From the NCBI GenBank assembly GCA_965649825.1, contig OZ287712.1, forward strand, positions 186,001 through 250,000: a DNA stretch of 64,000 nucleotides. Direction: 5' to 3'. The first letter of the stretch is position 1. Every line of letters begins with the position of its first letter. The notes under the pieces were generated by a model. It worked only from the letters and a program-made list of their open reading frames with translations, searched no databases and was not told the origin of the DNA. Below, piece after piece: positions 4,313 through 58,893 of the stretch. This DNA is from Penicillus capitatus. Taxonomy: Eukaryota; Plantae; Chlorophyta. The position numbers and the translations under genes are program-made.

Positions 4313-6419
<2,107 letters not shown>

Positions 6420-24268: not shown

Positions 24269-24270
24269 AG

Positions 24271-26091: not shown

Positions 26092-26141
26092 GCCAGCAGT
26101 CAGGCCTACTGTCGAGAAATCCTAGAATTGACTGCCGCAGT

Positions 26142-29583: not shown

Positions 29584-32500
29584 TTACACACTGGAAGAGG
29601 GACCTGGATTGCTAGGCGGATTGTAAGGTTCGCCAGTCCCTTTGCCACACAAGCGTCCAGTGCATTGCGTCACACGTGCAGAAAGAAAAGCCCTCAAGAC
29701 ACGGAAGGCGCTCCAGTCTTGGATATCTTCCATGCCTTGGTCTTCAAGGACAGCCTTCAGATAGACTTCCGCAGATTTGATGAAAGCATAGAACAGAACA
29801 AGAAAGAACCCGCAGATTGCCACAGACAAGAGAAGTGTGAGGAGAATCTTGACAGCATCAGAGGTGTGGTTGTCATTGAAAAACAAACCAGAGGCAAAGG
29901 TCAGTTGTGAAACAACCAAAGACGCCGTCTCGAATGCGTTCAGAAAAGTATAAGGCCCGTCGAAGGGCTGACAGCTAACATGGACATAGATTGCGAATGC
30001 CAGCACACAGACAGCGAGGATCCCTTGGATGTTGGTTCCTAAGGGATATGAAAAGGCCACCACGACAGTCAGAACAGCCTTTCTGAGCATCACTATGGAT
30101 TCCCAGAAAATGAAACGCTTTTTATAGGCGCGGTACAGAAATCCGGTGGCATCAGAGAGCCAGGGATTCTGACCGGGCTCCTGGGAGCGTTGTCTGATTA
30201 GGACGTACACCAGAAAGACAGGTAATCCAAAAGAAAAGATGACGAGGACAGGCCAACCCGCAGTTGCGGCGAGCACAGCATGAGATCCTTCATAGCATTT
30301 CAGGGAGGTATCCAGTGCCCAGTACTTGGCAGTATGATCATCATTGTCAACGGAGTCGTGGACCATGATGCAGTGAAGCGTGTTGACGGCTGTCTTGGTA
30401 ATGGACACGTAGGTAAGGTAAGCAACGGCCAGGAAACTGAGTAGTGCTCTCTTCGCGAAGTACCAGGTGTTCTCTTTTTGGTTCCGCGTCAAGAAGATCC
30501 AGAAAAATACGTAGAACAGAAATATACCTGAAGGGATGAGAAGGTGGATGATGGAACGCATGACGGATCTGGGTGGATTGTTGTGCAGATCAAACAGGCA
30601 GTCGACAGAGAGTGCGATCCCTGCAGTGGCAGCTCCGCTCATAAAGTCTATAAAACATCGGAGACTGTCGATAGGAGATTCTCAAGAGCAGACGACAGAA
30701 CAGAACCTGCTGTGAAGAGCAATGAACGCATCCAACTGGTCCAGTTCAGGTTGATGATTGCAGCTGTAGCGATCGCCTGGAGGAAATTGATGCCGATCTA
30801 CGACACAGCACGGTCTTAATATTGAAAAGGATGAAAAGGATTCTGCCTTGAAAACTTCGACGAGGATGAGCTTTGCAATGATTGGATCGGAGCTTGGTGC
30901 ATCATTGCTCGATACGGAATCAGGTTGATCTGGGAGAGGATCTTCCGGCGTTATCTCTTCTGTGTGCGTCGTTTCTACCAGTTCAAAGTGGCCTGGAATG
31001 TTGGTCGAGATTCTTTTCTTCGACGGAAAAGGCCGACGATTTTTTCGACTGACTCGATCAGTTGGATTAGGATTCGTTCGGCTTCGATTCACCACCAGCA
31101 TCCTTGTATCCAAGTTGCTTCGGATGGCGAAGCTGGAGAGAAGGAGCAACACAAGGATGGAAGCCACAAGAAGCATCGCCGTTTTAGAATCACGGTGGCA
31201 CTCATCGCATTCAAAGGACCAAGAGCGTCCATAGCCAGAATCACAGGCGCCACAAAGGAAACCAGTGTAACCCTAATAAGGCAGAATGATTGGCAATTGT
31301 CATCGCTAAGAGTAGCCTCACTTTTTTGCACTGAGCCGCGGAGTAGTCTCTGTCTAACGCCTCTTCGATCTCGCAGGTTTCCATTTCACTCGTCAAGTCG
31401 TTCAAAGCATCTTCTCGGCCATTGAAGTCACACGCCTTTCTCGAAACACACTGCTGGACGTGACGTGAACAGGGGGTTCGATGCCAATAGCCCCTGTTTG
31501 GGTGGATGACATCCGTGGTGCAGTTGCCGTTGTCTGGACATGGCAGGCACATAGATGCATCCGGGTCAAAGTTGTACTGCGACCCACTACAGCGGACACA
31601 GAGAGCCCCATCTTCCTGAACAGACTCCCCCAGCTGACACTCTCTGACTTCGACTTCGACGGAGAGCGGCTCCAGACCGGGTTCGCTGAAGTTCATTCGG
31701 ATCTCGTATCGGCCTGGACGCTGGAAACCGGAGATCGGCGGGAAGCTCTTCCGCTTCTCATTCACCTGCGTGTTGAACTCTCCAGAGAACAGACCGTCCG
31801 GAGAGTACATCGTTGCCTGGACAAATGCATCCCCTTCTCCGATGGCAGGACTCTGTCCGTACCCGTCCATGACCTCGACAAGAAGCATCGGAAGAGAGTC
31901 TCCGCTTCGATGGTTCCCAGAAACGAGTTCGTTGTTCTCGACGGGCCTTTCACTGTCGTCTTGACCATTGCCGATCGCAAATCCGCTGACGGATCTCGCA
32001 TACGAGGCAATGACTGGACCGTACAGATCAGCCTGGTTGGTCGTCCAGTCCGGGCACACATCCTTGATCGATTTCAGCAGATCCAATTCTTCTAGAGCGT
32101 CCGCCTGGTACACGTCAGGAGGCGTTTCTGTGTCTTTTGGCCGGCAGGAGTAACGAAGGACGTTCGGATCCTGTGTGAAGATGGCACCTCCGGATGTCTT
32201 CGCCTGATTGTTTGAGAACGTGTTGCCGGTCACTGCCACCAAGGTGCAAGAAGCATCTGATCTCGTGCAGTCTTGTTGATGGAGCTGAGTGGAAACATGC
32301 ACCGCACCTATGGCACACTCATAAGAGTTGCTCTGCTTTCAAACTATGAAGACACCTCCAAGATCGGCACTGTTGTCATTGAATGTGCAGTCATTCAGCT
32401 GCAGTGCCAGAGACTGGGGCTCGGAGGAGTCAAAAGCAATCGCTCCTCCATGTCCTTCTGCTTCGTTGTCACTGAAGGTGCATCGCGAGCACAGGAAGGT

Positions 32501-35500
32501 TGAAGGCGTATCTGCCAGAACGGCCCCACCACTTGCCATGGCCTCACACTCAGTGATCTTGAGTCCATTAGCTCTGAGACTTGACTTAGTGAGCCAAATA
32601 CCTCCGCCACGCATCGCTTTAGAGCTCGACAACAAGGTGTTTAAGATAATCGCCGAACTGTTCGGATTCAATAGGATTGATCCCCCGAAAAGAGCAGCCG
32701 TGTCATCTGTAAAAGAAGATTCTGTCAATTGCAATTTCGAGCGATACGCAGCGATGGATCCTCCAACACCTGCCTGGTTTTCTTGAAAGCGAGTCATGTT
32801 TGCATTCATCTCAGAATTCGCCAGAAAAACAACACCTCCAGCCGAAGTTGCTGCATTGTTCTTGACGGTAGACTCATGTAAGAACAACTGTGATCGTTCG
32901 TCAATGAAAAGGCAACCTCCGTTATCAGATCTGTTGTCGCGGAGAGAACACTTCGTCACGTTAACAATGCTCGATGCTGTACTGTGCAGGAATCCTCCTT
33001 CAACTGCTGCTTCATTGTCTACGACCGTTCCACCAATAACATACAGTTCCCCTTCAACGAGGAGAACGCCACCAGCATATCTCTGAGCACGATTGGACGA
33101 CATCCTGGAGTTCTCGAGAACAACTGAACCATTACTGGAAATACCGATTCCTCCGCCATTCGTGGAGGCGTTGTTGGAATCGACGATGCAAGCCAGCAAG
33201 TGCGCTACTGTCCTGCTTTGAACATCCAGACCACCACTGTTTGGAGCCGAATTGGAGCGCAAGACAGAATTGGACAGATTGAAGAGAGTTCTGCTTGAGC
33301 AACTAATTCCTCCTCCTCCTTCGTCGGCAGTGTTGCTGCGAACGATCAGATCGCTGCCAGTCACATCGCAGTTGACCAAATCGAAGCCGCCTCCATCACT
33401 GATAGCACGGTTGGACAAAAACAGAGAGTCCAGTATCGTGATCTCGCTCTGATCGCACGCAAAGCCACCTCCGTTTTCCGCATCAGCTATGTTTTCGGTA
33501 AAGTTCACGTTGAGGAGTGAAGTGGAAGCACGTGTAACATGCATTCCACCGCCCAAGCCGGCAGTATTCTGTGATACGAAGCAGTTCTTCAGGCTGATCG
33601 TTGCATCCCGAGCATCCACGCCTCCCCCAGAGATTTCTGCGCTGTTCCCAACGAAACTATCATTATCCACATCTGCCTCTGCATCCTCGACCATCAAGCC
33701 AGCACCTTCATTGGCCTCGTTTCCTGTATAGCTGCATCTGACAGACTCGACGCTGGAGTTCTTGACTGAAAGTCCCCCTCCTTTCACTTGAGCTGAGTTC
33801 GCTGACCATGTCACTTCTTCCAGACGAGCGTTGCTTTCCTCGCGGATCTCTGCTCCGCCACCGTCGAGAGTTGCACTGTTGTTAGAGAAGACGCATCGGC
33901 GAACGAGCAGACCATCCAAGGAGCCGCAGTCGAGGCCTCCGCCCGTCCTGGCAGAATTGTTGTTCACTGTGCATCTGATGAGTTCAATCTGAGCAGATGC
34001 TGACAGGAAGATGCCTCCTCCCTTGTCATACGCAACATTCTCCTCGAAGGTTGTGTCCACGATCTTGCTCTCCGAAACGTCATCGAGGTGAATGGCACCG
34101 CCGCTGTCTGCACTGTTCTTCGACATAACGGATCCGCGGACAGCGAGATCTCTCGATGCAGTTGTCTGCAGACAACCACCGTCTCTAGCCGTGCTGTTGC
34201 TGCAGTCCAGTGCAGATATCCTCGACGAGCTGCTCTCCGTCAGGAGAATGGACCCTCCTCTTCCCGATGCATTGTTGTTGCGGAAGATGGAGGAGATCAG
34301 CTCCAGGATGCCATTAGAGACAAGGAGAGCGCCTGCGTCCGTTGTAGCCGCGTTGTCTTGGAAGGAGCAGCCGTCGATCGTCAGATTTCCGTCGAAGGAG
34401 GCAATGGCGGCTCCGTTCTCTGCGGCATTGGACGTGAAGCTGGAGTTGGAGACTGAGAGGTTCTGTGTGAAATTCGACAGGATGGCAGCTCCAGAGAACA
34501 CGGCGGAGTTCTCGCGGAATGAACTGTCGACGACAGTGGCTGCTTGAACGCGGTCTAGTAGGAGAGCGGACTCTGTGGAGGTTCGGATATCGGCATTCCT
34601 CATGTCCAGGCTGCCTTCCACAACGCGGATTACGGAGAGCCCGTTTGAGCTTGCGGTCAGATCTTTTACTGATAACGATGAACCTGGCGGAGACGACATC
34701 AATGATAACGTCGGGACTTCTTCTGATAATCTTGTGTTCCTCCGAAGCCGAAGTCCTCTCAGATCGTTCTCCAGTGCCAGTCCGGCAAAGCACTGATTGC
34801 CGCAGGTATTGTTTGTGAACGCGACATCGATCATCTCCACAAAAGAGCACGACGAGTTGGAAGCAGAGAGGCCACTGGCTCCATTGAGAGAATTGCGCCT
34901 GAACGCCACGTGATGCAAAGAGATCTTCCCCAGAGGACTCTCCTGGAGACAGCTGTCAACCTGGATAATGGATGTGCCTTCTGTGTCCAACGTACAGCCC
35001 CGAAAGACTACGTTGGCGAGGAGCACATTGTGAGACCTGCGCAGTCATAACAGTCAGTCGCTTTGCTGGATTGGAAATTGATGTGGCTGGATCTACCTTA
35101 TGCGAAAGACTCCATCGTCTGACGGACATCTAAATCGAACTTTTCTCTCGGCTTTTGGAAAGATGCCATCGATAGGATCTGTTGATGAGACGTTGGAGCT
35201 CAGAGTGAGATTCCACGGCACAACAATTCGAGCAGGCATTCGTATCTCGTCTTCGACATTCAGTAGGATGACATCGTTCTCTCTGGTGCAGTTGACAACG
35301 ACACCGAGGTCGTCCGCTACGCCTTCCAGTGCCCTCGAGTCAATCAGCCACGTCCTACTCTCTTCGTCCAGAATGTCAGATATCTCCTGTCGCGTCAGCT
35401 GACACTCCGTATCTGATTACATCATACACAGCTTTAGTGGGATCAAGGTGCCGGTCGTATCACCTTCAGCAGCAGCAGCACGGGATCCTCTTTGCAACAA

Positions 35501-36010
35501 ATCGCGGATAGTCGAAGGGTCCTGAGAACAAATATGTTCTCTGTTGTCCTCCGAGTGATGACGAAGGGACATTAGATACCTGAGCAGTTGTATCTGCACC
35601 GGTCACCTCTTGCGTCCGTTCTTGAAGGCGTTCTCCGAGAACCTCTGGCATAACGCGCACATAATTAGCATCAATTGAAGCACTGAGCGAGAATGCGTTG
35701 GAGGGTAAATGTAAAGTGACGACAACGACAATTGGTCAACGAACACAGTTTTCCTGGGCGAGCGGCGCTTAGCGGACTCACTTGCCGAAATATGAGGCTC
35801 TGCGATGGTGACCTGGATTCTTTCCTTTTTCGCTGCGGCTTTCGCGAATGTCAGTAGCATAAAGCAAAGGAGTGCTGCCGTAGGACACCCGTATGCTTTG
35901 AAAGCGAAAGACATATTCCTCTTTCTGTCCCTACGGCCGTCACGTCTGGCTTTGTGCGTAAGATAACTGTATCCGTCAGATGTTCTTTTCTGCTTTCTGG
36001 CTCCGTCCAT
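29584..36010 (-). CDS. Large polytopic surface protein, copy 1: signal/anchor + pectin-lyase-like (Pmp GGA/FxxN) beta-helix + Cys-rich stalk + ~8-9 TM domain (~1,950 aa, ~9 exons)
   Basis: The 895-codon exon has repeated FxxN.A..GGAI motifs. CQLGE...CVRC...CLPCP..GNC...GYW...C and GY.G.LCGAC...YG follow, then hydrophobic helices with CYEGSH, GFLYRAY and FWESIVMLRK. All junctions close in frame. Confidence 0.88.
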
Positions 36011-37392
36011 TTAAGTCAACGTGTCTTTTTCGCCAAGAAAATCTAAACTGAACAATTTATACGACTGCGAAACGAACTCCAGCGCTTAAGTAGTCAGTTC
36101 AGATGAAGCTACAGGTCAGTGAACGACGAACTCGAATTGCAACGAAGTTGACAAGTAGTGTCCAGTGAATTAGCCGAGAACGTAACACCTGTCTATCTGT
36201 GTTTGGCTTTGACCGTCAGAATCTCCATCCACGCGTCGAAAACTCTCCTTGCCGTCGAGTCTACAATACTATGACGGAATTTCCTATGCTAACGGACAAT
36301 TGTCTTAACAAAAGCCGACCAGGCGTTGCAGAGGCATCCTGTTTTTCTATGCTCGTCGTCGAGTACTACGGATACCATACCTGTGTTCTGCTCGCTGTTT
36401 ATGTTTACTCGTCTGCAGAACGCTAGATGAAGGACGTTGCAAAGTGGCCTGCATGGAAACAGACTCCGTACATTTGCCGTCGAAGGTGTTGCGTCGCCGT
36501 ACGATAGGCGCGTTTGCCCGTCCAACTGTGTCGCTATGGAAGTGATCGCTAGGCGAGCAAAAAACGAATAGCTCTTCATTCGAAGAAACACAGAGTGTGA
36601 AACAGACAGACAGCCAGAACACGAAGGAACGGCTGTCTGCTTTGCAGACGACATGGTCCGCGTCGCTGCCGACCCTTCGGCGAAAGAGTTACGCAAGGCA
36701 CCACTTGAATCGCCGTCTACCTCGCTCCCGTTTGTTTGTTCATCGTCATATTGTTCTCGGGACACTGGCCAACGTCGTCGATACAGAATCTCTTCTGTGA
36801 TCATGCTCGTTACAAGTCAGAAGTGTTGGCTCGAAAAGTCAAGAACAAAAATGGGATGCCACCTGTCAGTGTTATCTGTGCAGCTGAGTAACGACCATCG
36901 GTTTTGAGCAGCATCTTGGTTGTTCAGACACGTTCCATTTAGCTGCGACTTCTGTGGTGCTTTCTTCCATCTATCACAAACAGGAAGATGAATAAAGCAT
37001 AGACAAGAGAACAACTGCATGCAGCATCACTGTGAGAAGTCTGTTCATATCTCTCTTTCCCTTGTGCCGAGCGCGGTGGAGTGACCGTGTCCGATGGTTA
37101 AGTTAAAACTCCTGTCCAGCGAAGACTCGGTCGTTTGCGTTTTCGATGGACGGTAAAACTAGGCTGCTAGAGTACGCGTAACGCTGTGCTGGATACTGAG
37201 TGACGAGCCGGCCGATTGCCTCGGGTCAAGTGTCAAAGGTTGCATCCGACCACGCTCGTTATAAGAGAAGGTCTAGAACACTATCCACAGCATCGACGCT
37301 CTCTGGAGCATGATACCGACGACAGGATCGACGCGTATAACAGAACAGCAGCTCGAAACGTACAATTTGGCGAATGGCATCGCATATCGCAT

Positions 37393-37561
37393 GTCACGTC
37401 ATCCACCACGTGGTCCTCATGCGATCTGCAGGCTCAGCAGACATGCAGCTGTCTGTCAGCGATACAACAAACAAACAGCGCTGCGAACTTCACAACATGC
37501 ATAACGCCATGCGGAAACCGTGAAGATGTTGTGAACTGCTCGGGTATATAAGCGACGCAAA
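37393..37561 (+). promoter_or_regulatory. Conserved promoter of secreted repeat-protein gene 1 (G-box CACGTG, 10-bp inverted repeat, TATATAA 37545)
   Basis: Only about 2 mismatches to 57250-57418 over ~169 bp. The TATA box is ~100 nt upstream of the ATG. Confidence 0.75.
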
Positions 37562-37649
37562 AGCACTCCCCCTCGTAAAGTGTTATTCTGTGAAACGAAC
37601 GGCGAAGTCGATTCGTAAGAACTGTCCCTTCGCCGAGTTGACCTTAGTC

Positions 37650-38192
37650 ATGAAACGCTGTATCCTTTGCCTTGTGAGTCCCGCCAACGTCACATCTATC
37701 AAGCTCTTTACCTGACTAACGGCATGGTGTCTGTTACAGACCATCGTTGTGTGTTCTGCTGCATGCAACGGTAACCTTTGCAAACGAAATGTGTACTAGA
37801 GTGGAAGTGGATGTGTTATCACAGCGTCGCGAGTTGGAATGGGAAGGGCCATGGGAAGAGCACTGGACGCCAAAATCGATGGGAGGCACTTATTGCAAAG
37901 CCCCAGCGAATCGCAAATCGTTCCGCCTTCGTCTATCTCCGCCAGCCCTGAAGTTACCGCGACTGTTGACGTTACCGCGGCTGCTAGCGGCGGCAGCGTT
38001 ACCGCGACTGCCGACGTTACTGCGGCTGCTAGCGGTGGCAGCGTTGTCGCGACGGCCAACGCTACCGCAACTGGCGCAAACGCAAACGCTACTGCGACTG
38101 TTGGCGGCACTGTCACGACACGTCCTGATGATTCCGTTCTCAAGTCCGTCGATTGTCGAGATAGATGTGAGTTACGTTCCATTACGAACTGA
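37650..38192 (+). CDS. Small secreted Ala/Thr/Ser-rich repeat protein, copy 1 (140 aa, 3 exons)
   Basis: Exons 37650-37673, 37740-37770 and 37825-38192 give the signal peptide MKRCILCLTIVVCSAACNA, then GRHLLQ, (T)A(T)xDVTAAASGGSV repeats and VDCRDRC. Donors GTGAGT/GTAACC and branch CTGACTAAC are present. Confidence 0.82.
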
Positions 38193-41100
38193 ATAACATT
38201 TCATCGCGGCAGGTCTGACAATTCCGGATTTACCGTGTTGCCTTGTCGGTTGATCGTTTTGAAGAGAATGACATTTCATCAAGCCAGGCTTGGCGGAGCC
38301 ATGGTCAGCCTGTGGCTATTATAGCCAAGGCATGTGTACTAACCGCTGAAATGCTGGTTGCTTGTATCAGAACCACATTTAAGCAGTTTGTTGAAACATC
38401 CGACTTCAGTTTACAACGACAATGCTATTGGCCTGCATTCCACAGACGTCGTGTCTGTCATGCGGCACATAAGCATAAATTAGATAGATCATAAGGTCAC
38501 ACAATTGTTCCATCGCTTGTTCGCATTTATCTCTGCTCTGACAGCGTCTTTGAATTTTTCTCCCCGCAAAGGTCGTACAGTGATTATCCGTTCCTGTCGC
38601 TGACTCTTTGAATAGGACGCCAGCGTCGAGGTTTAACGATCCCACGAAATCCGCGTATCGTCAATCAGTAAGTACCTTCTACACAAATGCGACTGCGTCC
38701 ATCGTGCAGTGTCGTTCACTGGTCTATCCATCCGAATTCGTCTCTGGCTAAGTTAAAAATGCGACGAAGGGGCAGGGTACAAACCGCAATGGCTGATGCT
38801 ATGGGTGTTTCCCCCGATTTGAAAGCAACCTTCAAAATCGCAATTGGAGTCGAATCTAGGATGTCTTGTAGGTTTTGTGTCGGTTTCCGAGCAAGGGAAT
38901 CCTGTTTCAGGCAGGACGTTCTAAAACTCGTTGTCTGGGTGCCGGAAAACATTGAAGGCCAAATCACGACGTCAAGAATGGCTTCTCTTAGTGACCAGTG
39001 TGCTTAATGGCAACGATGGAAGCTAACCGAAGGCTAGTCCCTATCACATGATGTTTCTCTTTCTTTAGTGCAAGTCAGAAACTCTGTGCGGACCTTCGAA
39101 CGTGATGATGGATGAAACATTATGTAAACCACTGTTTTCCCACTTCTAAAACATGACAAGACCCCAGTGTCCTTCTCTGTTTGATTCAAATAAATGAGCA
39201 CGATGTCCTCAGCACATTCGCCTCTTGAGTCTAGTAAAATGAACGAATGGCATCTCGTGGATGTCATTGAGTTTTCTAAACCCGATTCTGATCACCTGAA
39301 GAATTGTATAAAGCAGGCGCCATCCCTGTAACTGTAACGTAAAGGTATAACTAATAGAATCTACTCTTGCTTCTTGCGAGACTCGCACGTATTACCCTCT
39401 ATTTGTTCTTGCAAGATTTCTTCTGTCACTGGATCGTGGGGATGAATGACGCAACACAAGAGCAATTCGAACGTTACCTGTTCGGCATTGGAAGTTTCTG
39501 TTCAAAAGGTCATCATCAGTCGAAGAAATGCAAGAAGCCTAAGCTGAACAACTGAGTACCCTTGGAGCCTTTATAAAGTCTAGAAACTCCGTGTTCTGGT
39601 GTACACTACTACTCTCCACACGTCGGTAAACAAGACGATAACGTCATCTCTTGTGTGAATATGTGTTTAATAGATACAACGAAGGACTTCCTAGTGCTTA
39701 ACTTGCATCTATGTTGTCCCTGAAGGTTTGCCATAACACAGACGGCGAAATCTCCAGTTCTTGGCAAACACACCCACTGCCCCGGTAGTTCATCGCACCG
39801 GACTCTGTCCAGCAACCATCATCTTTGCCGTGTTCGGTAGTCAGTCTTTCGGTTTTTTTCATAGGGAGAACGACATGTGTATTCGTGACGACAACTGCCT
39901 CCCCGCTCACCACGGAACAACGACCGAGCAAGTTGTATGTACAGAAAAACACGTCCGCCGTCTTCCAATGTGCGATTCGAATCGGTGTGCCTGTCCGAGC
40001 CAGTTGAGAATATCCAAAAATCTGTCACAGCAAGCAGATCATTGGCGAGCTAGAATCGCGTGTCCCGCTTCTTTATCTTTTTGTGATCATATCTCTCTGC
40101 GTAGATTCTTCGACTGTAAATCGAAAGGACTCAAAGTTGCACCAAGGTGCTTAGCCACAGACACAGAATTCTCCACGGAACGCTCAAATCCGAGACGTTT
40201 GCCTGTCTAATGTCATCATCCAGACACGCCACTCGCAGAGAATGCTTGTCCCACAAGTCGCCAAGGAACGTCGACTGCTAAACGGCGTCAGATGCGAATT
40301 CACAGAGCTTCTGTTTCAGCCCGTTTCTTGATCTCCAAGACCACACGGGGCTTGCCACACGCCAAATCTTCTAACGCCCTCCCGTACAAAACACCTACCC
40401 TTCACGCCTGCGCCAGGAATGCGAGAGCTACTCGGACGATACAGACTGCACGGTCATCGATATCCTACACCCACCGTGTTTAGGGCCAGGGTATCCCGGA
40501 TCATGCCGAACGATCTACCACGGTGTTTTCCCGCTTATTTGCAGCCCAGGCCTTCGCGCCTGTAGCGCCTTGGCTCATCCTTCTCAGCGAGCCGAACGTG
40601 TCTTTCTTCTATGGATCGGCGTACCGAGCTCGAATTCCCCGCGTCTGTCGCGGCATCGCAAAGCACGCTGAGCGCGAGGTGGGGAGAGAGAGCGCGATGA
40701 GAACGAGGGTCCTGTCCGTCTCGCCGAGAGAGGATTTGCGCCTGCCGTTCTACCGAGAGCAATTGGCGGTCCTGATGGGAAGACGCGCAGAGCCGGCGTT
40801 CTTTCGGACACAGAAGGCAGCAGACTGCCTGGAGATCGTGGCCATGAAGACGCCGTCGACCGCTTTTCGTGATCGTCACAAGAAACGCGCGTCGTGAAAG
40901 CGAGTTCAAAAAACGGCTGCGATGCTTAAAGATCGAACATTAACAGGTAACCGGATTGTTCCAGAGGGTCATGCAAAATCTCCAGAACTCATGCCGGAAA
41001 GAATGCGATCGGCTTCTCATTCGTTAGGAGACGCGTTTTCAGCAGTAGCTTCTCTCCCAGCCTGGTGCTTGGATGAACTCAGGATGGCCGTAATATCCCT

Positions 41101-47100: not shown

Positions 47101-48040
47101 TTCCCGCGAGCCAGCCAATTGGATCAAGAACCACAAATAGCAACGGAAGTAATTACATGTTTGCAGCTCCTGCCAATAAATGAAAACTCATGCGAACGGT
47201 AAATTGCGTCATCGCAGCCTTCGACGGTTCTAACCTCTCCGGCACATTTAGATGGTCTACCCATGATGAATGCCTTCCACAATGGTCTCTGCCCGATGTT
47301 TAAGGATTAGTTTCATTCCATGAGTTCTATTCATTTGGTTTTGATCTCTCCTTCCGAAGATTCTCTCTTCTTCAACATCACTGTCTCTTTGGTGAGCTCG
47401 ACTGTGTGTGCGATGAACGCCTTCATTACATCCATTAACTAAACGATGTTTCTATCTAATGCTTGGAAAGACTCAAGCACTTTATGCGTCTTTGAATCGG
47501 CATTGTGTGTTAGTCATTCTTTCTAGTCGTTCTGCTTGCTTGATCCTTCATGTCCATTGTAGATGCAGAAACGTTCGAGACAGCACACATGCTCGACAAC
47601 AACAATCTTGGATAAACCCCGTACGCTCCTTTACCAAACCTCATCCTTGGGTACGCAAGAAAGCAATACCCCTCCCCTTCCCGCGTTCTGGGTCGATCAC
47701 TCAACAGTCGCAACGTGCATCGAGCATGAGAATGCGCGTCTTGAAGAGAAAATCGCGACACAAGGACAGCAATGTCATCTTTCGCGAGGTAACACGGAAT
47801 CTCACTCCAAACCCACTTTGGCACATAATCTTACGAACCGAAGTCTAGTGTTTTTTTAGCCAAGATCCTCCTAGTCTCCCGCCTCGACGTACCTGATGCG
47901 AAACACAATCCCGTTCTGTCGACCTTCTGCATCTGCGTACGACTCTTTGATGCGACAGGAAGGAAGGCGAGGAAGGGAATTTCACAGGCGAAAGAGAAGG
48001 TGACATGGACAACATATTCCACAAAGCTTCATGATCAGCA

Positions 48041-48260
48041 TCGTTACGATTTCGAATCAAAGAGTGCCACATACCAGTTTAATCTGCTCAAGAGCTTTGC
48101 ATTTGGCCTCTGCCGTCGACAAAGTTGAATGCATTTGGCAATGCCGATGTCGTCCGTTCACAACGAGAATGGTAGGAGATCGCTCAGCCTTCTGTCGAGA
48201 AATAGCCGAAAAAAATTCAACACACTCACATTGGTTATTGTCCGATCATGCACACACAGC
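48041..48260. repeat. Dispersed ~230-bp repeat, copy 2 (other copy 16556-16785)
   Basis: Same shared blocks as at 16556-16785. Confidence 0.75.
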
Positions 48261-49447
48261 ACTCCGATGAAGAACGGAGGTCAGGTCCACGATCTCAGTC
48301 ATACTGCGCCACAAGATCGTCCATGATACGTAAATAACTTGAACTCTGCGATGCTGCCAGATTTTTCGTCTTCTGACTTAATACCGTCATGCTTATCATT
48401 GCCGACAGGGCAGCAAAGAAGGATCATCTCTTGCATGATGAAATCGGATGTCGGCCATGTGATGAATGAAGTGCTCGAGAAGAACGATCATCCCACATCT
48501 CTATCGCAGAATTCGGATTACTGAACGGACAACGATGACGATGCAAACAAAGAGTCGTCATGTCATGTAGATGAGGCGGAAACGATAGATGTATGTTTGC
48601 ATTACTGTGCGATGCGGTTTTATCATCGATCCGTTCTCTGTGTCGGAGATGTCTGCTCCCAGAATGTCCCGATCATCACTGACGTTGCGCAGTCCAGAAT
48701 GGCAGGATTGGATTGTTTGCGAGGACAGAACCGCGCTATCGAATGTGTATTTCGACATCCATTTAACAAAAAATCGATTGCAGTCGAGAGCGGATACATC
48801 GTGTGCGTCAAATCAAAGATCGATTACATCTGGATGATGTACATCGTTCACTGTTGTGACAAATGGACCTTTCATTTGTACGAAGAACAGTGATTCATTG
48901 AATCTACGTGAGACTTGCGAGATCTCGGGCTATGCTTTAAAACGAAGGAGCCGCAAAAGCCAGGTTACGTAGTAAAGACGATGCCATTCGCAAATGCTAT
49001 TGCACTTTTATGCAAATAGACTCCGCTGTTAAGACAAGGAGACTATCTCTAAACAGATTTTTCACTGATGGGCGATGGATTAACAATGTGATACAAAACA
49101 CTTGTGGTAAAAGGATGTATCGCAATCCTGCTCCGTTTATGTGCTTCCAATACATGTCCTTGTAATGAGCGACACGTTCAAGTTAATACTCAGTAAGGAT
49201 ATCCGGCCATGCAAAAACTATGACAGAAACCGGCACTTGGTAGTTGGCCAGTCGGCCAAGGAAACGAAAAACAACTCCTGCGAGAAAAGTCTCCGACACT
49301 GTATCCAGATCGATTCATGCAACGACAGATTCGTGCAATGGATGACAAGTCACACAACTTATGTTTATACGATTAAAAAGAAAAAACACATCACTGATTC
49401 AATGAAAACAGAAAAGCTGTCGCCCATCGAAGCTAATGTGGAGCGAT

Positions 49448-52400
49448 TTACACACTGGAAGAGGGACCTGGATTGCTAGGCGGATTATAAGGTTCGCCAG
49501 TCTGTTTGCCACACAAGCGTCCAATGCATTGCGTCACACGTGTAGAAAGAAAAGCCCTTAAGACACGGAAGGCGCTCCAGTCTTGGATATCTCCCATGCC
49601 TTGGTCTTCAAGGACAGCCTTCAGATAGACTTCCGCAGATTTGACAAAGGCGTAAAACAGAACAAGAAAGAACCCACAGATTGCCATGGACAGCAGAAGT
49701 GTGAGGAGAATCTTGACCGCTTCAGAGGTGCGATCGTCATTAAAGAACAAACCAGAGGCGAAGGTCAGCTGAGAAACAACCAAAGATGCGGTCTCGAAGG
49801 CATTCAGAAAACCATAAGGCTCGTCGAAGGGCTGACAGGCACCATGGACATAATATGCGAATGTGAGAATGCAAACAGCGAGGATCCCTTGGATGTTGGT
49901 TCCCAAGGGATAGGAGAAGGCAACCACGACAGTCAAAACAGCCTTTCTGAGCATCACTATGGATTCCCAAAAAATGAAACGCTCTTTGTATGCACGGTAC
50001 AGGAATCCGGTGGCATCAGCGAGCCAGGGATTCTGACCGGGCTCCTGAGAGCGTTGTCTGATTAAGACATAAGCCAGGAAGGCAGGTAGTCCAAAGGAAA
50101 AGACAACGAGGACAGGCCAACCCGCAGTTGCGGCGAGCACAGCATGAGATCCTTCATAGCATTTCAGGGAGGTATCCAGCGCCCAGTACTTGGCAGTATG
50201 ATCATCATTGTCAACGGAGTCATGCACCCTGATGCAGTGAAGCGTGTTGACGGCTGTCTTGGTAATGGACACGTAGGTAAGGTAAGCAACGGCCAGGAAA
50301 CTGAGTAGTGCTCTCTTCGCGAAGTACCATGTGTTCTCTTTGTGCTTTCGCGTCAAGAAGATCCAGAAAATTACGTAGAAAAGAAATGTGCCTGCAGGGA
50401 TGAGAAGGTGGACGATGGATCGCATGACGGATCTGGGTGGATTGTTGTGCTGATCAAACAGGCAGTCCACAGAGAGAGCTATTCCTGCAGTGGCAGCTCC
50501 GCTCAGGAAGTCTGCAAGACACAAGAGAGCGTCGACAAGACATTTTTGAATTCAGAAGCCCCATAGCATACCTGCTGCGAACAGCAATGAACGCATCCAA
50601 TTGGTCCACTTCAGGTTGACGATTGCAGCCGTCGCAACCACTTGAAGGAAATTGATGCCGATCTGTGATACAGAACGGACCTGCGTATTGGAAAAGATGA
50701 AAAAGATATTGCCTTGAAGATTTCGACGAGTATGAGCTTCGCAATGATTGGATCGGAGTGTGATGGGTCATTCCTCGTTGCGGATTCAGGTCGATCTGGG
50801 CGCACAGCTTCTGGCGTTATCTCTGCTCTCTGTGTCGTTTCCACCAGTTCGAAGTGGCCTGGAATGTTGGTCGACGAGATTCTTTTCTTCGAAGGAACAA
50901 GCCGACTATTTTTTCGACTGACTCGATTGCTTGGATTATGATTTGTTCGGCTTCGATTCGCCACCAGCATCCTTGTATCTAAGTTGCTTCTAATTGCGAA
51001 GCTGGAGAGAAGAAACAACACAAAGATAGAGGCCACAAGAAGCATCGCCGTTCCAGAATCACGGTAGCATTCGTCGCATTCAAAGGACCAAGAACGTCCA
51101 TAACCAACATCACAGGCGCCACACAGGAAACCAGTGTAACCCTAATAAGGCAGAATGATTGGCAATTGTCGTCGCTGAGAGTAGCCTCACTTTCTTGCAC
51201 TGGGCCTCCGAGTAGTCTCTGTCCAGTGTCTCTTCGATTTCGCAGGTTTCCATTTCTCTCGTCAAGTCGTTCAAAGCATCTTCTCGGCCACTGAAGTCAC
51301 ACGCCTCTCTCGAAACACACTGCTGGACGTGACGTGAACAGGGGGTTCGATGCCAATAGCCCCTGTTTGGGTGGATGACATCCGTGGTGCAGTTGCCGTT
51401 GTCTGGACATGGCAGGCACATAGATGCATCCGGGTCAAAGTTGTACTGCGACCCACTGCAGCGGACACAGAGAGCCCCATCTCCCTGAACAGACTCCCCA
51501 AGCTGACACTCTCTGACTTCGACTTCGACGGAGAGCGGCTCCAGACCGGGTTCGCTAAAGTTCATTCGGATCTCGTACCGGCCTGGACGCTGGAATCCAG
51601 AGATCGGCGGGAAGCTCTTCCGCTTCTCATTCACCTGCGTGTTGAACTCTCCAGAGAACAGACCGTTCGGAGAGTACATCGTTGCCTGGACAAATGCATC
51701 CCCTTCTCCGATGGCAGGACTCTGTCCGTACCCGTCCACGATCTCGACAAGAAGCATCGGGAGGGAGTCTCCACTTCGATGGTTCCCAGAAACGAGTTCG
51801 TTGTTCTCGATAGGCCGTTCACTGTCGTCTTGACCATTGCCGATCGCGAATCCGCGGACGGATCTCGCATACGAGGCAATGACTGGACCGTATAGTTCGG
51901 CTTCGTTGGTCGTCCAGTCTGGGCACATATCCTTGGTCGATTCCAACATCTCCAATTCTTCTAGAGCGTCCGCCTGGTACAACTCAGGAGGCGTTTCTGT
52001 GTCTTCAGGAGAGCAGGAGTAACGAAGGACGCTGGGATCCTGTGTGAAGATGGCACCTCCGGATGTCTTGGCCCGATTGTTTGAGAACGTGCTGCCGGTC
52101 ACTGCCACCAATGTGCAAGAAGCATCTGATCTCGTGCAGTCTTGTGGATGGCGCTGAGTGGAAACATGCACCGCACCTATGACACACTCATGAGAATTGT
52201 TCTGCTTTCAAACTATTAAGACACCTCCAAGATCGGCACTGTTGTTATTGAATGTGCAGTTGTTCAGCTGCAGCGCCAGAGACTGGGACTCGGGGATATC
52301 AAAAGCAATCGCTCCTCCGTGCCTATGTGCTTCGTTGTCACTGAAGGTGCATCGCGAGCACAGGAAGGTGGATGACGCGTCCGCCAGAACAGCCCCACCG

Positions 52401-55400
52401 TCTTCCGTGGATCCACACTTAGCGATCTTGAGTCCATTAGCTGCAAGATTTGTCCACTGAGTGAGCCAAATGCCTCCGCCACGCATCGCTTTCGAGCCCG
52501 TCAGCGAAGTATTTAAGATAATCAACGAACTGTTACTACCCGATTGGATTGATCCCCCTTCAAGTGTAGCCTTGTCATCTGTGAAATCGGACTCTGTCAA
52601 TTGCAACCTGGAGTTATACACAGCGATGGACCCTGCAACGTTTGCCTGGTTCTCTTGAAATCGAGTCAGACTTGCATTCATTTCAGAATTCGCCATAAAA
52701 ACAGCGCCTCCGGCCAAAGTTGCCGTGTTGTTCTTGATAGTGGAGTCATGAAAGAACACTTGTGTTTGTGCGTCAATGAAGAGGCAGCCTCCGATGTACG
52801 CTATGTTGTCGCGGAGATAACACTTCGTCATGTTGACGATGCTGGATGCTTCACCATGCAGGAAACCTCCTTCAACTGCTGCTTCATTGTCTACGACCGT
52901 TCCACCAATGACATGCAGTTCCCCTTCACGAAGGTGAACGCCACCAGCATATCTCTGTGCACGATTAGACGATATTCTGGAATTCTCGAGAACAACTGTG
53001 CTGTTACTAGAAACACTGATTCCTCCACCATTCGTGGAGGCACTGTTGGACTCGACGATGCAAGTCAGCAAGTGCGCCACCGTCCTGCTTTGAACATCCA
53101 GAGCCCCACCGTTTGGAGCCGAATTGGATTGCAAGAAAGAATCGGACAGATTGAACAGCGTTCTGCTCGAGCAACTGATTGCTCCTCCTCCTTCATCAGC
53201 AGTGTTGCTTCGGATGGTTAGATAACTGGCAGACACGTCGCAGTTGACCAAATCGAAGGCACCTCCAGAACTGGTAGCACGGTTGGACAAAAACAGGGAG
53301 TCTAAGATCGTAGTCTCGCTCTGATCGCACGCAAAGCCACCTCCTCCTTTAGCAGCTATGTTTTCTGTGAAGTTCACTTTACGAAAGGAAGTGGGAACAC
53401 GTGTGACGTGCACTCCGCCACCCGATCCAGCGGTATTCTGTGATACGAAGCATTCTTTCAGGCTGATTGTTGCGTCCAGAGCATCAACACCTCCTCCAGA
53501 GATTTCTGCGCTGTTTTCGACGAAACTATCATCATCCACATCTGCCTCTGCATTCTCAACCATCAAGCCAGCACCTTCACTGGCCTCGTTTCCCAGATAG
53601 TTGCATCTGCGAGACTCAATGCTGGAGTTTTTGACTGAAAGTCCTCCTCCTTTCACTTGAGCAGAGTTCGCTGACCATGTCACTTCTTCCAGACGAGCGT
53701 TGCTTTCCTCGCGGATCTCTGCTCCGCCACCGTCGAGGGTAGCGTTGTTGCCAGAGAAGACGCATCGGCGGACGAGAAGATCGTCTGAGGAGCTGCAGTC
53801 GAGGCCTCCGCCCGTCCTGGCAGAGTTATTGTTCACTGTGCATCTGATAAGTTCCATCTGAGCGGATGCGGAGAGGAAGATGCCTCCTCCCTTGTCTCGC
53901 GCGACATTCTCCTCGAAGGTCGTGTCCACGATCTTGCTCTCCGAAACTTCATCGAGGTGAATGGCACCGCCGTTGTCTGCACTGTTCTTCGTCATAACGG
54001 ATCCGCGGACGACGAGATCTTCAGATGCAGTTGTCTGCAGACAACCACCGTCTCTAGCCGTGCTGTTGCTGCAGTCCAGTGCAGATATCCTCGACGAGCT
54101 GCTCTCCGTAAGGAGAATGGACCCTCCTCTTCCCGATGCATTGTTGTTGCGGAAGATGGAGGAGATCAGCTCCAGGATGCCATTGGAGACAAGGAGAGCG
54201 CCTGCGTCCGTTGTAGCCGCGTTGTCTTGGAAGGAGCAGCCGTCGATCGTCAGATTTCCGTCGAAGGAGGCGATGGCGGCCCCGTTCTCTGCGGCATTGG
54301 ACGTGAAGCTGCAGTTGGAGACTGAGAGGTTCTGTGTGAAATTCGACAGGATGGCAGCTCCAGAGAACAGAGCGGAGTTCTCGCGGAACGAACTGTCGAC
54401 GACACTGGCTGCTTGAACACGGTCCAGCAGGAGAGAGGACTCTGTGGAGGTCCGGATATCGGCATTCCTCATGTCCAGGCTGCCTTCCACGACGCGGATT
54501 ACGGAGAGCCCGTTTGAGCTTGCGGTCAGATCTTTTACTGATAACGATGAACCTGGCGGAGACGACATCAATGATAACGTCGGGCCTTCTTCTGATAATC
54601 TTGTGTTCCTCCGAAGCCGAAGTCCTCTCAGATCGTTCTCCAGTGCCAGTCCGGCAAAGCACTGATCGCCGCAGGTATTGTTCGTGAACACGACATCGTT
54701 CATCTCCACAAAAGAGCACGACGAGTTGGAAGCAGAGAGGCCACTGGCTCCATTGAGCGAATTGCGCCTGAATGTCACGTGGTGCAGACTGATCTTTCCC
54801 GGAGGACTCTCCTGGAGACAGCTGTCAACCTGGATAATGGATGCGCCTTCTGTGTCCAACGAACAGCCGCGAAAGACTAAATTGGCGAGGAGCACACTGT
54901 GAGACCTGCGCAGTCATAACAGTCAGTCGCTTTGCTGGATTGGAAATTGATGTGGCTGGATCTACCTTATGTGAAGGATCCCATCTTCTGACGGACATCT
55001 GAATCGAACTTTCCGGTCTGCCTTCGGGAAGATGCCATCGACGAGATCGGTTGATGGGACGTAGGAGCTCAGAGTGAGATTCCAAGGCACGACAACTCGA
55101 GCAGGCACTCGTATCTCGTCTTCGACATTCAGTAGGATGACATCGTTCTCTCTGGTGCAGTTGATAATGACACCGAGGTCTTCCGCTACGCCTTCCAGTG
55201 CCCTCGAGTCAATCAGCCACGTCCTTGTCTCTTCGTCCAACAGATCTGAGATCTCCTGCCGCGTCAACTGACACTCCGTATCTGATTACACCATACACAG
55301 CTTTAGTGGGATCAAGGTGCCGGTCGTACCACCTTCAGCAGCAGCAGCACGGGATCCTCTTTGCAACAAATCGCGGATAGTCGAAGGTTCCTGAGAACAA

Positions 55401-55887
55401 ATATGTTCTCTGCTATCCTCCGAGTGATGACGAAGGGACATTAGATACCTGAGCAGTTGTATCTGCACCGATCACCTTTTGCGTCCGTTCTTGAAGGCGT
55501 TCTCCGCGGACATCTGGCAAAACGCGCACATAATTAATCACTGTTAATTGAACCAAGCAGCGAGAATGCAATGCAGCGTATATGTAAAGTGATGACCATG
55601 GCAATTCGTCAGTTTAACATAGTTTTCCTAGGCGATCGGGATTTCTCTGACTCACTTGCGAAAGCATGGGGCTCTACGAAAGTGATCTGGATTTCTCCCT
55701 CGGACTGCGCTGTGGCTAGCGCAGATGTTAGAAGGACAAAGCAAAGAAATGTTGCCATAGGACATCCATGTTCTTTGACAGCAGAAGGCATCTCCCTCAA
55801 TCTGTCGCTGCGGTTGTCAGGTTTGTCTTTGTGCGTCGGAAGACTAGATCTGGCAGAGATTCTTTTCGGCTTTCTGGTTCCGTCCAT
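49448..55887 (-). CDS. Large polytopic surface protein, copy 2 (paralog of 29584-36010)
   Basis: Same exon structure, with 895-, 353- and 358-codon ORF-track segments and intact frames. Confidence 0.88.
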
Positions 55888-57249
55888 TCTAGTCCACGTG
55901 TCTTTCTCGCCAAGAGAATCCGAACAAAAAACGACTTAAGCGAGTGGGAAACGAACTCCAGCGCTTAAGTAGTCGCTGTAGACGCAGCTTCGGGGGAGCG
56001 GACGACGAAGTTGACTAGGTATGAAGTTGACAGGTAGTGACCAGCGAAATAGCCGAGAACGTAACACCTGTCTGTCTGCGTTTGGCTTTGACCGCGGGAG
56101 CCGTATCCATTTGCCAAAAAGTCGCCTTGTCACCAAATCTGCAATACCACGACGGAATCTAGTGTAAACGGACAGCTAAGTTGTCTTGAAAAAGCCTGCT
56201 GCAGATATACGTTGTCATTCCACACTCATTGCCGAGTACTACTGATACCATCTGTACCTGTGTTATGCTCGCTGTTCATCTTTGCTCTCCTGCAAAAACT
56301 CTATCTAGATGACGATGTCGCATACACATTAGACAAAATCGCCTCACGGAGACAAAAATTCGTCCATTTGCGTCTGAAGGTGTTTAGCTGCCGTGCCTAA
56401 GATCGCGTTTGCTCGTCCAACTGCGTCGCTGTGGAAGTGACGGCACTAGGTGAGCAAAACTGGTTAGTCCTCGTTCAAAGAAACGTAACGTGCGCGTCAG
56501 TCAGTACACGAAGGAACGTCTGTCTGCTTTGTGGACGACGCGTTTCGTCTCGCTGCCGACCCCATCGGCAAGAGAACTACGCAAAGCACCACTTGAATCG
56601 CTATCTACTCCTTGATCCTGTTTGTTCGTTTGTTCGCGGGACACCGGCTCTCATCGTCATGCGAGATCTTCTGTCATCATGCTTGTTGCAAGTCTGAATT
56701 GTCATTTCTAGAAGGTACGAGCATAACTGAGAGGCCACACATGTTAGTGTTCTTTGTGCATCTGAGTAACTGTAACAGCTTTTAATGAGTACCTTAGTTT
56801 ACAGACAGGTTTGTTTTACTTAGCTGGGATTTTTTTCATTCTTAGCTCCATTATGAATGTTAAGATGGATAAAAAGAACGTAAGGGAGTTAACTGCAGTC
56901 TCACTGCGAGAAGGTTTTTTCCTTTACCTTTTTTCTGCGCGAAGAGGCGTGATCGTTCTCTGTGTTTGGATAAAAACTCGTGTTTGGCGAAGACGCAATC
57001 GTTTGCGTTTTCTACGGAGGTCGAACGCAGACCGCTCGAGTACGCACAATGCGGCGCTGGTTGCGGAGTGACAAGATGGTTGGTTGCCTCGGGTCGAGCG
57101 TCAGGGATTACATTCGATCACGTTCGCTGCAAGAGAAGATCGAGTAGACTACTCACGGCGCTAACGTTCTTTTGGACATGATGTCCACGACAGGCGAGGA
57201 GCGGATAAGAGGATAAAGGGCAACTTAACGAATGGCTGGTATGCGGCGT

Positions 57250-57418
57250 GTCACATCATCCACCACGTGGTCCTCATGCGATCTGCAGACTCAGCAGACA
57301 TGCAGCTGTCTGTCAGCGATACAACAAACAAACAGCGCTGCGAACTTCACAACATGCATAACGCCATGCGGAAACCGTGAAGATGTTGTGAACTGCTCGG
57401 GTATATAAGCGACGCAAA
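57250..57418 (+). promoter_or_regulatory. Conserved promoter of secreted repeat-protein gene 2 (TATATAA 57402)
   Basis: Near-identical to 37393-37561. Confidence 0.75.
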
Positions 57419-57506
57419 CGCATTCCTTGCGTAAAGTGTTTATTCCGTGAAACAAACGGCGAAGTCGATTCGTAAGCACTGTCCCTTCGCCGTGTTGACC
57501 TTAGTC

Positions 57507-58216
57507 ATGAAACGATCCGTCCTTTGCGTTGTGAGTCCCGCCAACCTCGCGTGTGTTAAAATCGCCACCTGACTGACGGCGCGTTGTCTGTTGCAGATCG
57601 TCGTCGTTTTGTGTTTCGCTTCATGCGACGGTAACCTTCGAATGCGAAATGCGTCATAGTGTTGGAAGGGGATGTGTTTTTCTTAGCGTCGCGAGTCGGA
57701 ATGGGAAGTATCGTGGGTAAAGGTGCTATCATGGGAAAAGCAGTGGACGCCGAATTCCGTGGAAGGGACTTATTGCAAAGCCCCAGCGAGCCGCAAATGG
57801 CTCCTCCTCCATCCACCTCCGCCAGCCTCGAAGTTACCGCCGCTGCCTCAGATGCCAACGCTACCGCCGCTGCCTCAGATGCCAACGCTACCGCCCCTGC
57901 CTCAGATGCCAACGCTACCGCCCCTGCCTCAGATGCCAACGCTACCGCCACTCTCTCTGCTTCAGCTGCCGCCCCTGCCTCAGATGCCAACGCTACCGCC
58001 ACTCTCTCTGCCTCAGATGCCAACGCTACCGCCACTCTCTCTGCCTCAGATGCCAACGCTACCGCCACTCTCTCTGCTTCAGCTGCCACCCCTGCCGCCA
58101 CTCTCTCTGTTTCAGCTGCCACCCCTGCCGCCCCTGCCTCGGATGCCAACGCTACCGAAATTGGCGCAGCAGAATTCACCACGGCAGACGTCGATTGTCC
58201 ATTTCTCTGCAAGTAA
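57507..58216 (+). CDS. Small secreted Ala/Thr/Ser-rich repeat protein, copy 2 (195 aa, 3 exons)
   Basis: Exons 57507-57530, 57597-57630 and 57687-58216 give the signal peptide MKRSVLCVIVVVLCFASCDA, then GRDLLQ, ASDANATA repeats and VDCPFLCK*. Confidence 0.82.
57838..58156 (+). repeat. Coding minisatellite (cctgcctcagatgccaacgctaccgcc-type 27-33-nt units)
   Basis: About 8 copies of (c/g)gatgccaacgctac are interleaved with actctctctg and cagctgcc sub-units. Confidence 0.9.
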
Positions 58217-58893
58217 TGTTTCATTACGAACAGAGTAACGTTTCATCCTATCAGGCTTGGCGGGGTTGAGGAATTTGCCTTGTTGCGATTTTCTAGCTTG
58301 ACTAGAATAACGTTTCATCAAGGCAGGTTTGCCGGAGCCAAGGTTATTCTGTCGCCATTAAAAACAAGGCAAATGTGCAAAATAGTGAAACGCTGGTCGC
58401 TTATTTCAGAACTCCCTTTAAGCGGTTTTTTGATACATGGGATTCAAGTCCATAACGACAACACTATTGGCGCCTCATTGTACAGAAGACGTGTCTGTCA
58501 TGACGTCGACGAGAGTGTCGATTCGATAATAACGTGGCTCGATTGTTCGAACACGTGTTCGCATTTTGTTCAACTTAGATGACGTTTTCAAATCATTTGC
58601 GCCAATGTCTGACGCTGACGTTTGAAAAGGGCGCCATCGTTTGGAAGGACCACACATCGTTTGCTAGAGCCCGTGTCTCGACGGGCAGCAGGGCAAGAGC
58701 TCTTGGACATCCCTCCGTCAAGTTTTCCCTTGTATCTCCATCTCCTTAAGATCATCAGAAGAAGTGCTGAAAGGGCACGATGCCGATTCTTCGTTCCGGC
58801 TGCCGCAAGCTACCATCCTGCAATTCTTCTCTCTCGCTCCGTCTTCATCACCCTCTCACTGCTCCTCCCTTTCCAGTCTGTCTCCGATAGCAT

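Follow-up and report, generated by a model that had tools for sequence, protein, structure and literature searches.

Organisation of the tandem array

The window analysed here, that is the whole stretch of 64,000 nucleotides (nt) at positions 186,001-250,000 of contig OZ287712.1 of the green alga Penicillus capitatus (guanine-plus-cytosine content of about 53%), carries a tandem array of gene pairs, each made of a large gene for a beta-helix membrane protein and a small gene predicted to encode a secreted protein. Tandem units of 19-22 kb, far above chance expectation, were detected by self-blastn and a repeat finder, and in each complete unit the large gene is located on the minus strand with the small gene on the opposite strand, head to head with it. 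As delimited by self-blastn and repeat families, repeat unit A (18775-40170) is composed of segment X1, a long terminal repeat (LTR) retrotransposon, large gene A, small gene A and a spacer, and repeat unit B (40171-59125) of segment X2, a 2.9-kb spacer, large gene B and small gene B. The start of repeat unit C, with segment X3 (59126-64000), is cut by the window end.

Self-blastn resolved the repeats into a segment Y in two copies (28581-37960 and 48417-57840; 85% identity over 9.5 kb) and a segment X in three (18775-23960, 40535-45416 and 59489-64000; 85-93% identity). For unit C, the homology runs from 40171-42984 to 59126-61925 and from 42978-44757 to 62217-64000; the third unit that an earlier, sequence-only reading of this DNA had placed at 59498 is thus present, but by homology it starts at 59126, with its copy of segment X at 59489. 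From start to start, the repeat finder gave a spacing of 21.5-21.8 kb (unit A) and 18.9-19.2 kb (unit B), unit A being the longer one because of the LTR retrotransposon at 24066-28581. Unit A is also without about 2.9 kb present in unit B at about 45520-48417, an AT-richer spacer to which positions 23960-24066 correspond in unit A. Since a sister species (ENA ERZ26696514) has part of this spacer (47022-48229) conserved as well, downstream of its large gene, unit A has undergone a deletion.

Models of the large genes

Gene models were built from GT/AG logic and comparison of the copies. Large gene A (29584-36010, minus strand) is predicted to encode 1985 amino acids (aa) from an ATG at 36010 to a stop at 29584-29586, in nine exons (36010-35778, 35682-35580, 35521-35464, 35412-35097, 35036-32356, 32307-31322, 31272-30847, 30797-30707 and 30647-29584). 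Large gene B (49448-55887, minus strand) is predicted to encode 1982 aa from an ATG at 55887 to a stop at 49448-49450, likewise in nine exons (55887-55656, 55540-55449, 55390-55333, 55281-54966, 54905-52225, 52176-51191, 51141-50713, 50662-50572 and 50511-49448). Both copies are open to the stop, each with eight short GT..AG introns of 48-115 nt. These models confirm the divergent start codons read earlier for the large genes (36010 and 55887) and the small genes (37650 and 57507), about 1.6 kb apart, as well as the intactness of the large protein, whose previously estimated length of about 1,950 aa was slightly short.

Two introns call for caution in these models. The donors of intron 1 (35777-35683 in copy A, 55655-55541 in copy B) are 4 nt apart between the copies, which is needed for the conserved downstream frame. 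For intron 7 (30846-30798 and 50712-50663), copy B has no GT donor and, therefore, a GC-AG intron common to both copies is the most economical model. A non-standard genetic code for the large gene was considered and rejected, as the in-frame stops all lie inside GT..AG introns of 48-60 nt that the two copies share.

Beta-helix and stalk of the large protein

From its N-terminus, the large protein consists of a signal peptide, a Pmp-type beta-helix, a beta-rich and Cys-rich stalk, a first transmembrane helix (TM1), a cytosolic loop and a multi-helix membrane domain. A hydrophobic signal-like segment lies at aa 42-60, and 26 N-X-S/T glycosylation sequons are found in the protein. The Pfam family Chlam_PMP (PF02415; gathering cut-off 20.6) was matched with 44.8 bits by the 895-aa exon and with 20.8 bits by the next exon, and the repeated motifs of this family are present as 5 GGA[ILV] and 19 FxxN in copy A and as 8 and 18, respectively, in copy B. 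The AlphaFold2 model of the beta-helix exon (893 aa) reached a predicted local distance difference test score (pLDDT) of 94 and a predicted template-modelling score (pTM) of 0.84, with about 33 regular three-strand coils. When this model was submitted to Foldseek, all matches were right-handed beta-helix proteins (autotransporter adhesins, PL6 lyases, tailspikes), among them pertactin (probability 1.00, TMt 0.47), Ag43 and TibA. The earlier assignment to a Pmp-type beta-helix of the adhesin kind is thus upheld by the PF02415 score, the model and the structural matches.

The Cys-rich part gave a match to DUF7630 below threshold. Pfam scans of the N-terminal region returned only Pmp repeats and DUF7630, with no ML-like (TRP_N) domain; no autotransporter domain was returned either, the C-terminus being instead an all-helical membrane domain, and the scans of the exons and of the C-terminal 852 aa returned no kinase domain.

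The likeness to chlamydial Pmp and autotransporter adhesins (pertactin, Ag43, TibA) covers the repeated GGA[ILV] and FxxN motifs, the right-handed three-stranded coil and the occurrence as clustered multigene paralogues. The algal protein differs in being eukaryotic, with introns, in having an alpha-helical multi-pass anchor and no beta-barrel translocator, and in its much longer helix of about 33 coils. The Pmp-like proteins of Trichomonas, regarded as candidate surface adhesins (PMC11288935), are also eukaryotic and share the signal peptide, the extracellular Pmp repeat domain and a membrane anchor, but theirs is a single transmembrane helix with a short endocytic tail, whereas the algal proteins have a domain of about 9-10 helices.

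Membrane domain of the large protein

TM1 (aa 1491-1509) is followed by a basic loop of about 90 aa and then by a further bundle of about 8 helices, bringing the membrane domain to a total of about 9-10 helices. The last exon, covering 353 aa of this domain, was modelled by AlphaFold2 as a helical bundle with a small beta-hairpin of conserved Cys (pLDDT 88, pTM 0.80). The closest relatives of the large protein, with 54-76% identity, are open reading frames (ORFs) on Mb-size contigs of two ENA assemblies, that of the sister species and that of a more distant species, hereafter species 2 (ENA ERZ25074695; about 56% protein identity). The next ones, at about 22-26% identity, are hypothetical proteins of Bryopsis, Tetradesmus, Chlamydomonas, Saprolegnia and Blepharisma, some of them carrying PF06011 (TRP).

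The Cys-rich and membrane module was searched in a library of 1.84 billion proteins clustered at 50% identity, which yielded 4,467 clusters at E ≤ 1e-3 and 194 at E ≤ 1e-30, the module being mostly C-terminal in proteins of 1,500-3,400 aa. This family spreads over green algae, oomycetes and ciliates, and the relatives found carry at most generic or domain-derived names. PF06011 was matched by 7 of the 40 aligned relatives of the membrane domain (best E 7e-13); relative P0022 scores 32.3 bits and relative P0010 25.6 bits for a cut-off of 28.5, and the homologues carrying PF06011 include those of Saprolegnia and Bryopsis. As judged from these profile matches, the membrane domain appears to be a member of a very large family in eukaryotes, to which the "TRP-like" Flc/Pkd2 proteins of fungi are remote relatives.

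In several relatives (P0241-P0246), two Cys-rich/membrane modules occur in one database gene model. Such two-module models are probably tandem neighbours fused by gene prediction, and they hint that tandem arrays are common in this family.

The fungal Flc/Pkd2 proteins (Schizosaccharomyces pombe Pkd2, Saccharomyces cerevisiae Flc1-3, Aspergillus nidulans TrpR) share with the algal protein a signal peptide, a large N-terminal domain outside the cell and a membrane domain of several helices at the C-terminus. The ectodomain of Pkd2, which has a signal peptide too, is ML-like and its membrane domain TRP-like (PMC6727746), and the protein is reported to let Ca2+ pass when the membrane is stretched (PMC9727806). 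The algal ectodomain, on the other hand, is a Pmp beta-helix with a Cys-rich stalk and not an ML-like lipid-binding domain, TM1 and the cytosolic loop are additional to the bundle, and a coiled-coil tail was not detected. An adhesin-type beta-helix is joined to an Flc/Pkd2-like membrane domain in this family, and in the literature searched no paper mentions both PF02415 and PF06011. The confident model of the membrane domain has no solved counterpart.

The small gene and its predicted product

Small gene A (37650-38192, plus strand) was modelled with exon 1 at 37650-37673, exon 2 at 37740-37770 and exon 3 from 37825, the latter ending at a stop at 38190-38192 if unspliced and containing a possible further donor at 38167. 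Small gene B (57507-58216, plus strand) was modelled with exons at 57507-57530, 57597-57630 and 57687-58216. The distance between the ATGs of the small and large genes, on opposite strands, is 1,640 bp in unit A and 1,620 bp in unit B. The layout of the small gene comprises a TATA-like box about 100 nt upstream, a 24-nt exon 1, a 66-nt intron, a 31-34-nt exon 2, a second intron and an exon 3 starting with (A)SRVG, with the signal-peptide-like sequence being split by an intron. Just upstream of the small gene, the block of the divergent intergenic region that holds the TATA-like box (TATATAA, 37545-37551) is 92-93% identical between the two units.

The predicted product of small gene A has a signal peptide (MKRCILCLTIVVCSAACNA), a conserved stretch with RHLL and a repeat rich in Thr, Ala, Ser and Gly, and that of small gene B has (A)SDANATA(T/P) repeats with 8 N-X-T sequons. 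Nine copies from three species were compared, namely the two of the window, five of the sister species (two at locus L001, one at L006 and two at L002) and two of species 2 (L003 and L005). All nine keep the TATA box, an in-frame start codon, a signal peptide (by inspection), both intron positions and phases and a CTAAC-type branch site. In the relatives in which the ATG of the window is replaced, the start codon has moved 15 nt upstream. Insertions and deletions come in multiples of three in the exons but not in the introns. A conserved stretch of about 30 aa, ending in [FI][RS]GR-x-[LV]-[LS] (RHLL, RDLL or RRLL), is likewise present in the nine copies; in the window this motif lies at 37880-37900 and 57760-57780, about 25 aa past the signal peptide. 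We take it, as a lead only, to resemble the R-x-x-L or R-x-L-x pro-protein sites of site-1 protease and subtilases.

Past R-x-L-L there is a low-complexity region of 43-145 aa, with 0-2 Cys and 48-72% Pro, Ala, Ser and Thr (PAST), the fraction being 0.56 and 0.72 in the window copies and 0.48-0.72 in the relatives. Repeat type and number are wholly different between copies, window copy B having ASDANATA repeats and one relative (L2a) Ser-Pro-rich ones. The small protein matches no Pfam family, and a profile search of 5.8 billion proteins returned a single relative, located in the array of the sister species, the power of such a search being low for so short a protein. From the features kept among the copies, the small gene is very probably a real gene for a secreted protein.

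A signal peptide together with at least 50% PAST in the mature region defines the arabinogalactan-protein/hydroxyproline-rich glycoprotein (AGP/HRGP) class, and with 0.56 and 0.72 both small proteins of the window have this composition. Like the AGP/HRGP of plants and green algae, the small proteins combine a signal peptide, a region with 48-72% PAST, a variable repeat number and, in L2a, Ser-Pro-rich repeats. They differ in that no glycosylphosphatidylinositol-anchor signal or known HRGP globular domain was found, for a 3' end that is itself only predicted, and in their additional, predicted features, a conserved pro-region with R-x-L-L and Asn-Ala-Thr sequons.

Linkage of the two genes in related species

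In the sister species, locus L006 on contig ctg303589 holds a lycopene cyclase gene (85.6% identical to window 15551-16450), followed by a first large gene, a small gene and a second large gene; the gene orientation is that of the window, and the array adjoins lycopene cyclase in both species. Compared with L006, the window has an extra 12.5 kb (16450-28953) holding segment X1 and the retrotransposon. Two more pairs (L002) lie on the same contig about 35 kb past L006, and the sister array spans at least 78 kb. A further two pairs occur on another contig of this species (L001), 95-97% identical to L006 in parts. The head-to-head arrangement was observed at all five small genes seen in these three loci.

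In species 2, the small gene is head to head with the first large gene of the array (L005, and L003 on a variant contig), and no small partner could be detected for two more copies of the large gene, which lie 9.5 kb from each other. Motif searches, blastn and ORF inspection of the intergenic regions of locus L004 revealed no small gene, only a 51-nt minisatellite. This minisatellite (L004 7114-7467; about 7 copies, 97-99% identical) lies between two large genes at the place where a small gene would be expected. Just upstream of the species 2 array there is a 518-aa ORF with leucine-rich repeats (L003 3406-4962, L005 2883-4439). In Bryopsis, a distant homologue of the large gene lies in a same-strand cluster of Pmp-like genes without a small-gene neighbour.

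The two genes have, as the sequence-only reading held, been amplified together as a unit, there being two complete units in the window and the same arrangement in relatives. Their joint occurrence, which that reading proposed to check, was seen in both window units, at the five small genes of the sister species and at the head of the species 2 array; the small gene is absent upstream of the two other copies of species 2 and in Bryopsis.

Selection and homogenisation among the copies

The two large proteins of the window are 85.6% identical, with 0.076 nonsynonymous (dN) and 0.24 synonymous (dS) substitutions per site and a ratio (omega) of 0.31, all selection estimates given here being from paralogues and not from alleles. 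Between copies A and B, no 100-codon window had an omega above 1; the maximum was 0.83, in the leader, and the distal beta-helix gave 0.55-0.59. In paralogue pairs of the two related species, the omega of the beta-helix exon was 0.29-0.62, and one 60-codon window near the distal end of the beta-helix had an omega of about 0.9-1.1 in two species, a value derived from few substitutions. Purifying selection thus acts on the copies, and no region is consistently above an omega of 1.

Amino acid identity between A and B falls to 54% in the N-terminal leader, to about 70% in the distal beta-helix and to 76-78% in the predicted cytosolic loop after TM1, with large blocks at 95-98%. Consequently, the proposal that the units differ in their exposed parts is only partly right, the divergence being concentrated in these three regions and large blocks having hardly changed. 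The dS along the large gene varies between 0.055 and 0.56, a mosaic indicating gene-conversion tracts on an older duplication and not suppressed recombination. Whole units are 85% identical within the window, 83-97% within the sister species and 76-80% between species; being more alike within than between species, they have undergone concerted evolution or independent amplification. The array has probably grown by unequal crossing-over and been partially homogenised by gene conversion.

Proposed function and alternative explanations

With a probability of about 0.5, the locus represents a family of surface proteins for sensing or adhesion that evolves in concert, together with a co-inherited, possibly co-regulated gene for a matrix glycoprotein. 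After cleavage of its signal peptide, the large protein would present a glycosylated beta-helix of about 1,100 aa on its stalk at the cell surface, with one membrane helix leading to the basic cytosolic loop and the bundle of about 8 helices. Its most likely job would be to couple contact of the beta-helix with glycans of the wall, the matrix or a foreign surface to a response of the membrane. With fission-yeast Pkd2 as the model, this response could be a stretch-dependent entry of Ca2+, and, on that analogy, sensing of the wall, matrix or foreign surface with an ion-flux output would be the best-supported mechanism. The small gene would provide a secreted pro-protein with a conserved R-x-L-L site and a fast-changing, PAST-rich repeat of AGP/HRGP-like composition; inherited together with the large gene, it may also be co-regulated with it via the 1.6-kb divergent promoter region. 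The conserved head-to-head partner offers a testable handle on what the large proteins sense and, should the two products interact, they would constitute a new kind of algal surface sensing module.

Several observations weigh against this proposal. When the membrane-domain model was compared with PDB by Foldseek, the best match had an E of 0.35, template-modelling scores were below 0.25 and no TRP channel was among the matches; a profile search of PDB sequences with the same domain was empty. A canonical TRP fold (six transmembrane helices, pore loop, tetramer) was consequently dropped for this domain, nothing significant being present in PDB by fold or profile, and without a counterpart there a channel function would depend on a remote relationship with fungal proteins, the mechanism of which has itself been established only in part. 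Moreover, the membrane domain of the window copy falls below every Pfam threshold for PF06011; since some of its relatives but not the copy itself match this family, the link to Flc/Pkd2 is transitive. Over most of the divergent intergenic region (36011-37649 in unit A, 55888-57506 in unit B), identity between the units is only 60-78%, making a shared regulatory module less plausible, and the gene models, above all the 3' end of the small gene, are predictions from sequence alone. Finally, the exons of the small gene are no better conserved than its introns, and all three frames are open across its repeat, for which reason ORF length is weak evidence for this gene. Together with the missing Pfam family and a sole database relative lying in the array of the sister species, these last two properties would also be expected if the small ORF were not protein-coding but, for example, a promoter-associated or non-coding transcript. 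This seems quite improbable considering that in all nine copies the ATG stays in frame, by a compensating shift between species, and a typical signal peptide and the conserved peptide motif are retained, and that they share intron positions and phases with exon insertions and deletions in multiples of three.

If the small gene does encode a protein, it may still be a neighbour by descent only, that is, an unrelated, fast-evolving matrix protein gene that happened to lie beside the founder large gene and was copied along with no functional tie. The poor conservation of most of the intergenic region, the non-coding 5.2-kb segment and the retrotransposon also carried by the unit, the duplication of the large gene in species 2, twice without the small gene, and the same-strand clusters of Bryopsis homologues without such a neighbour all agree with this explanation. 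It is nonetheless somewhat unlikely given that the two genes have stayed linked, in the same orientation, while protein identity dropped to about 56% and the spacers were rearranged many times; an unlinked copy of the small gene was not found either, in a search of low power for so short a protein. Even if the two products do not interact, the locus shows cleanly how an array of surface-protein genes evolves in concert. The same conserved linkage, kept head to head in three species with large proteins down to about 56% identical, makes a receptor/ligand or receptor/tether relation possible at a low probability. The small glycoprotein would in that case pair specifically with the large protein encoded next to it, the matched pairs diversifying in a cognate receptor-ligand or self/non-self cassette such as the Brassica self-incompatibility locus (S-locus), to which the sequence-only reading had likened the array. 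As with SRK and SCR, there is tight linkage between a "receptor-like" membrane gene and a gene for a small secreted protein, and both vary between units; in addition, the large protein is most variable in the distal beta-helix, where omega reaches 0.55-0.59 over 100 codons and about 0.9-1.1 in the one 60-codon window of two species, and the small protein joins a conserved pro-region to a variable mature part. This comparison was not borne out. Omega is below 1 almost everywhere, with its single high window depending on few substitutions, gene-conversion mosaics run through the copies, and two large-gene copies of species 2 have no detectable partner. The Pfam scans gave no kinase or other S-locus-type signalling domain, and the small protein varies in the number and type of repeats of a low-complexity sequence, with no change of a folded domain and nothing of a defensin-like Cys-rich fold. 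S-loci are, furthermore, allelic systems, whereas the copies here are tandem paralogues under purifying selection and gene conversion. It is, therefore, very unlikely that the R-x-L-L-cleaved variable glycoprotein is an extracellular ligand or tether of the neighbouring beta-helix/Flc-Pkd2-like protein, and that the array would be a set of specificities by which cells recognise other cells or surfaces (gametes, kin or substrate); if true, recognition would here be based on a channel-like receptor and not on a kinase.

Non-coding segment, retrotransposon and flanking genes

Segment X (5.2 kb), delimited by copy comparison and apparently non-coding, is 90-98% identical between its three copies, compared with 85% for the genes. 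Among 861 variable sites, its substitutions have no codon periodicity, and there is no long ORF bias. An Rfam scan of the whole window, segment X included, gave no match, terminal direct or inverted repeats were searched for in the segment and none were found, and the sister species does not have the segment at its syntenic locus. A spacer homogenised by conversion, a non-autonomous element and a long non-coding RNA are possible identities.

The retrotransposon of unit A (plus strand, 4.5 kb), identified by self-blastn, Pfam and its ORFs, is a complete Ty3/gypsy-like element with ORFs for gag-protease, reverse transcriptase-RNaseH and integrase. Its 203-bp LTRs have TG..CA ends and are 100% identical, and there is a GTAG target duplication; this points to a very recent insertion, found in unit A only. 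A related retrotransposon adjoins the array in the sister species (L001 640-5198).

The first 18 kb of the window contain housekeeping genes. A plastid-type phosphoglucomutase (4313-6400) was identified by database search; its leader is rich in Arg and Ser, resembles a transit peptide and not a signal peptide, and its best named relatives are those of Micractinium (70%), Picochlorum (65%) and land plants (about 60%). A diatom-type origin of the DNA, considered in view of an RXL-like motif, was rejected on account of this leader and these relatives. The lycopene cyclase gene (14296-16347, minus strand) was named from the Lycopene_cycl Pfam match of the homologous ORF in L006. Readings of ORF translations gave names to an Rrp8-like methyltransferase (133-963), an aconitase-family/LeuC-like ORF (2638-3210), a response-regulator-like ORF (6719-7159) and an RluA-type pseudouridine synthase (11781-12713, minus strand).

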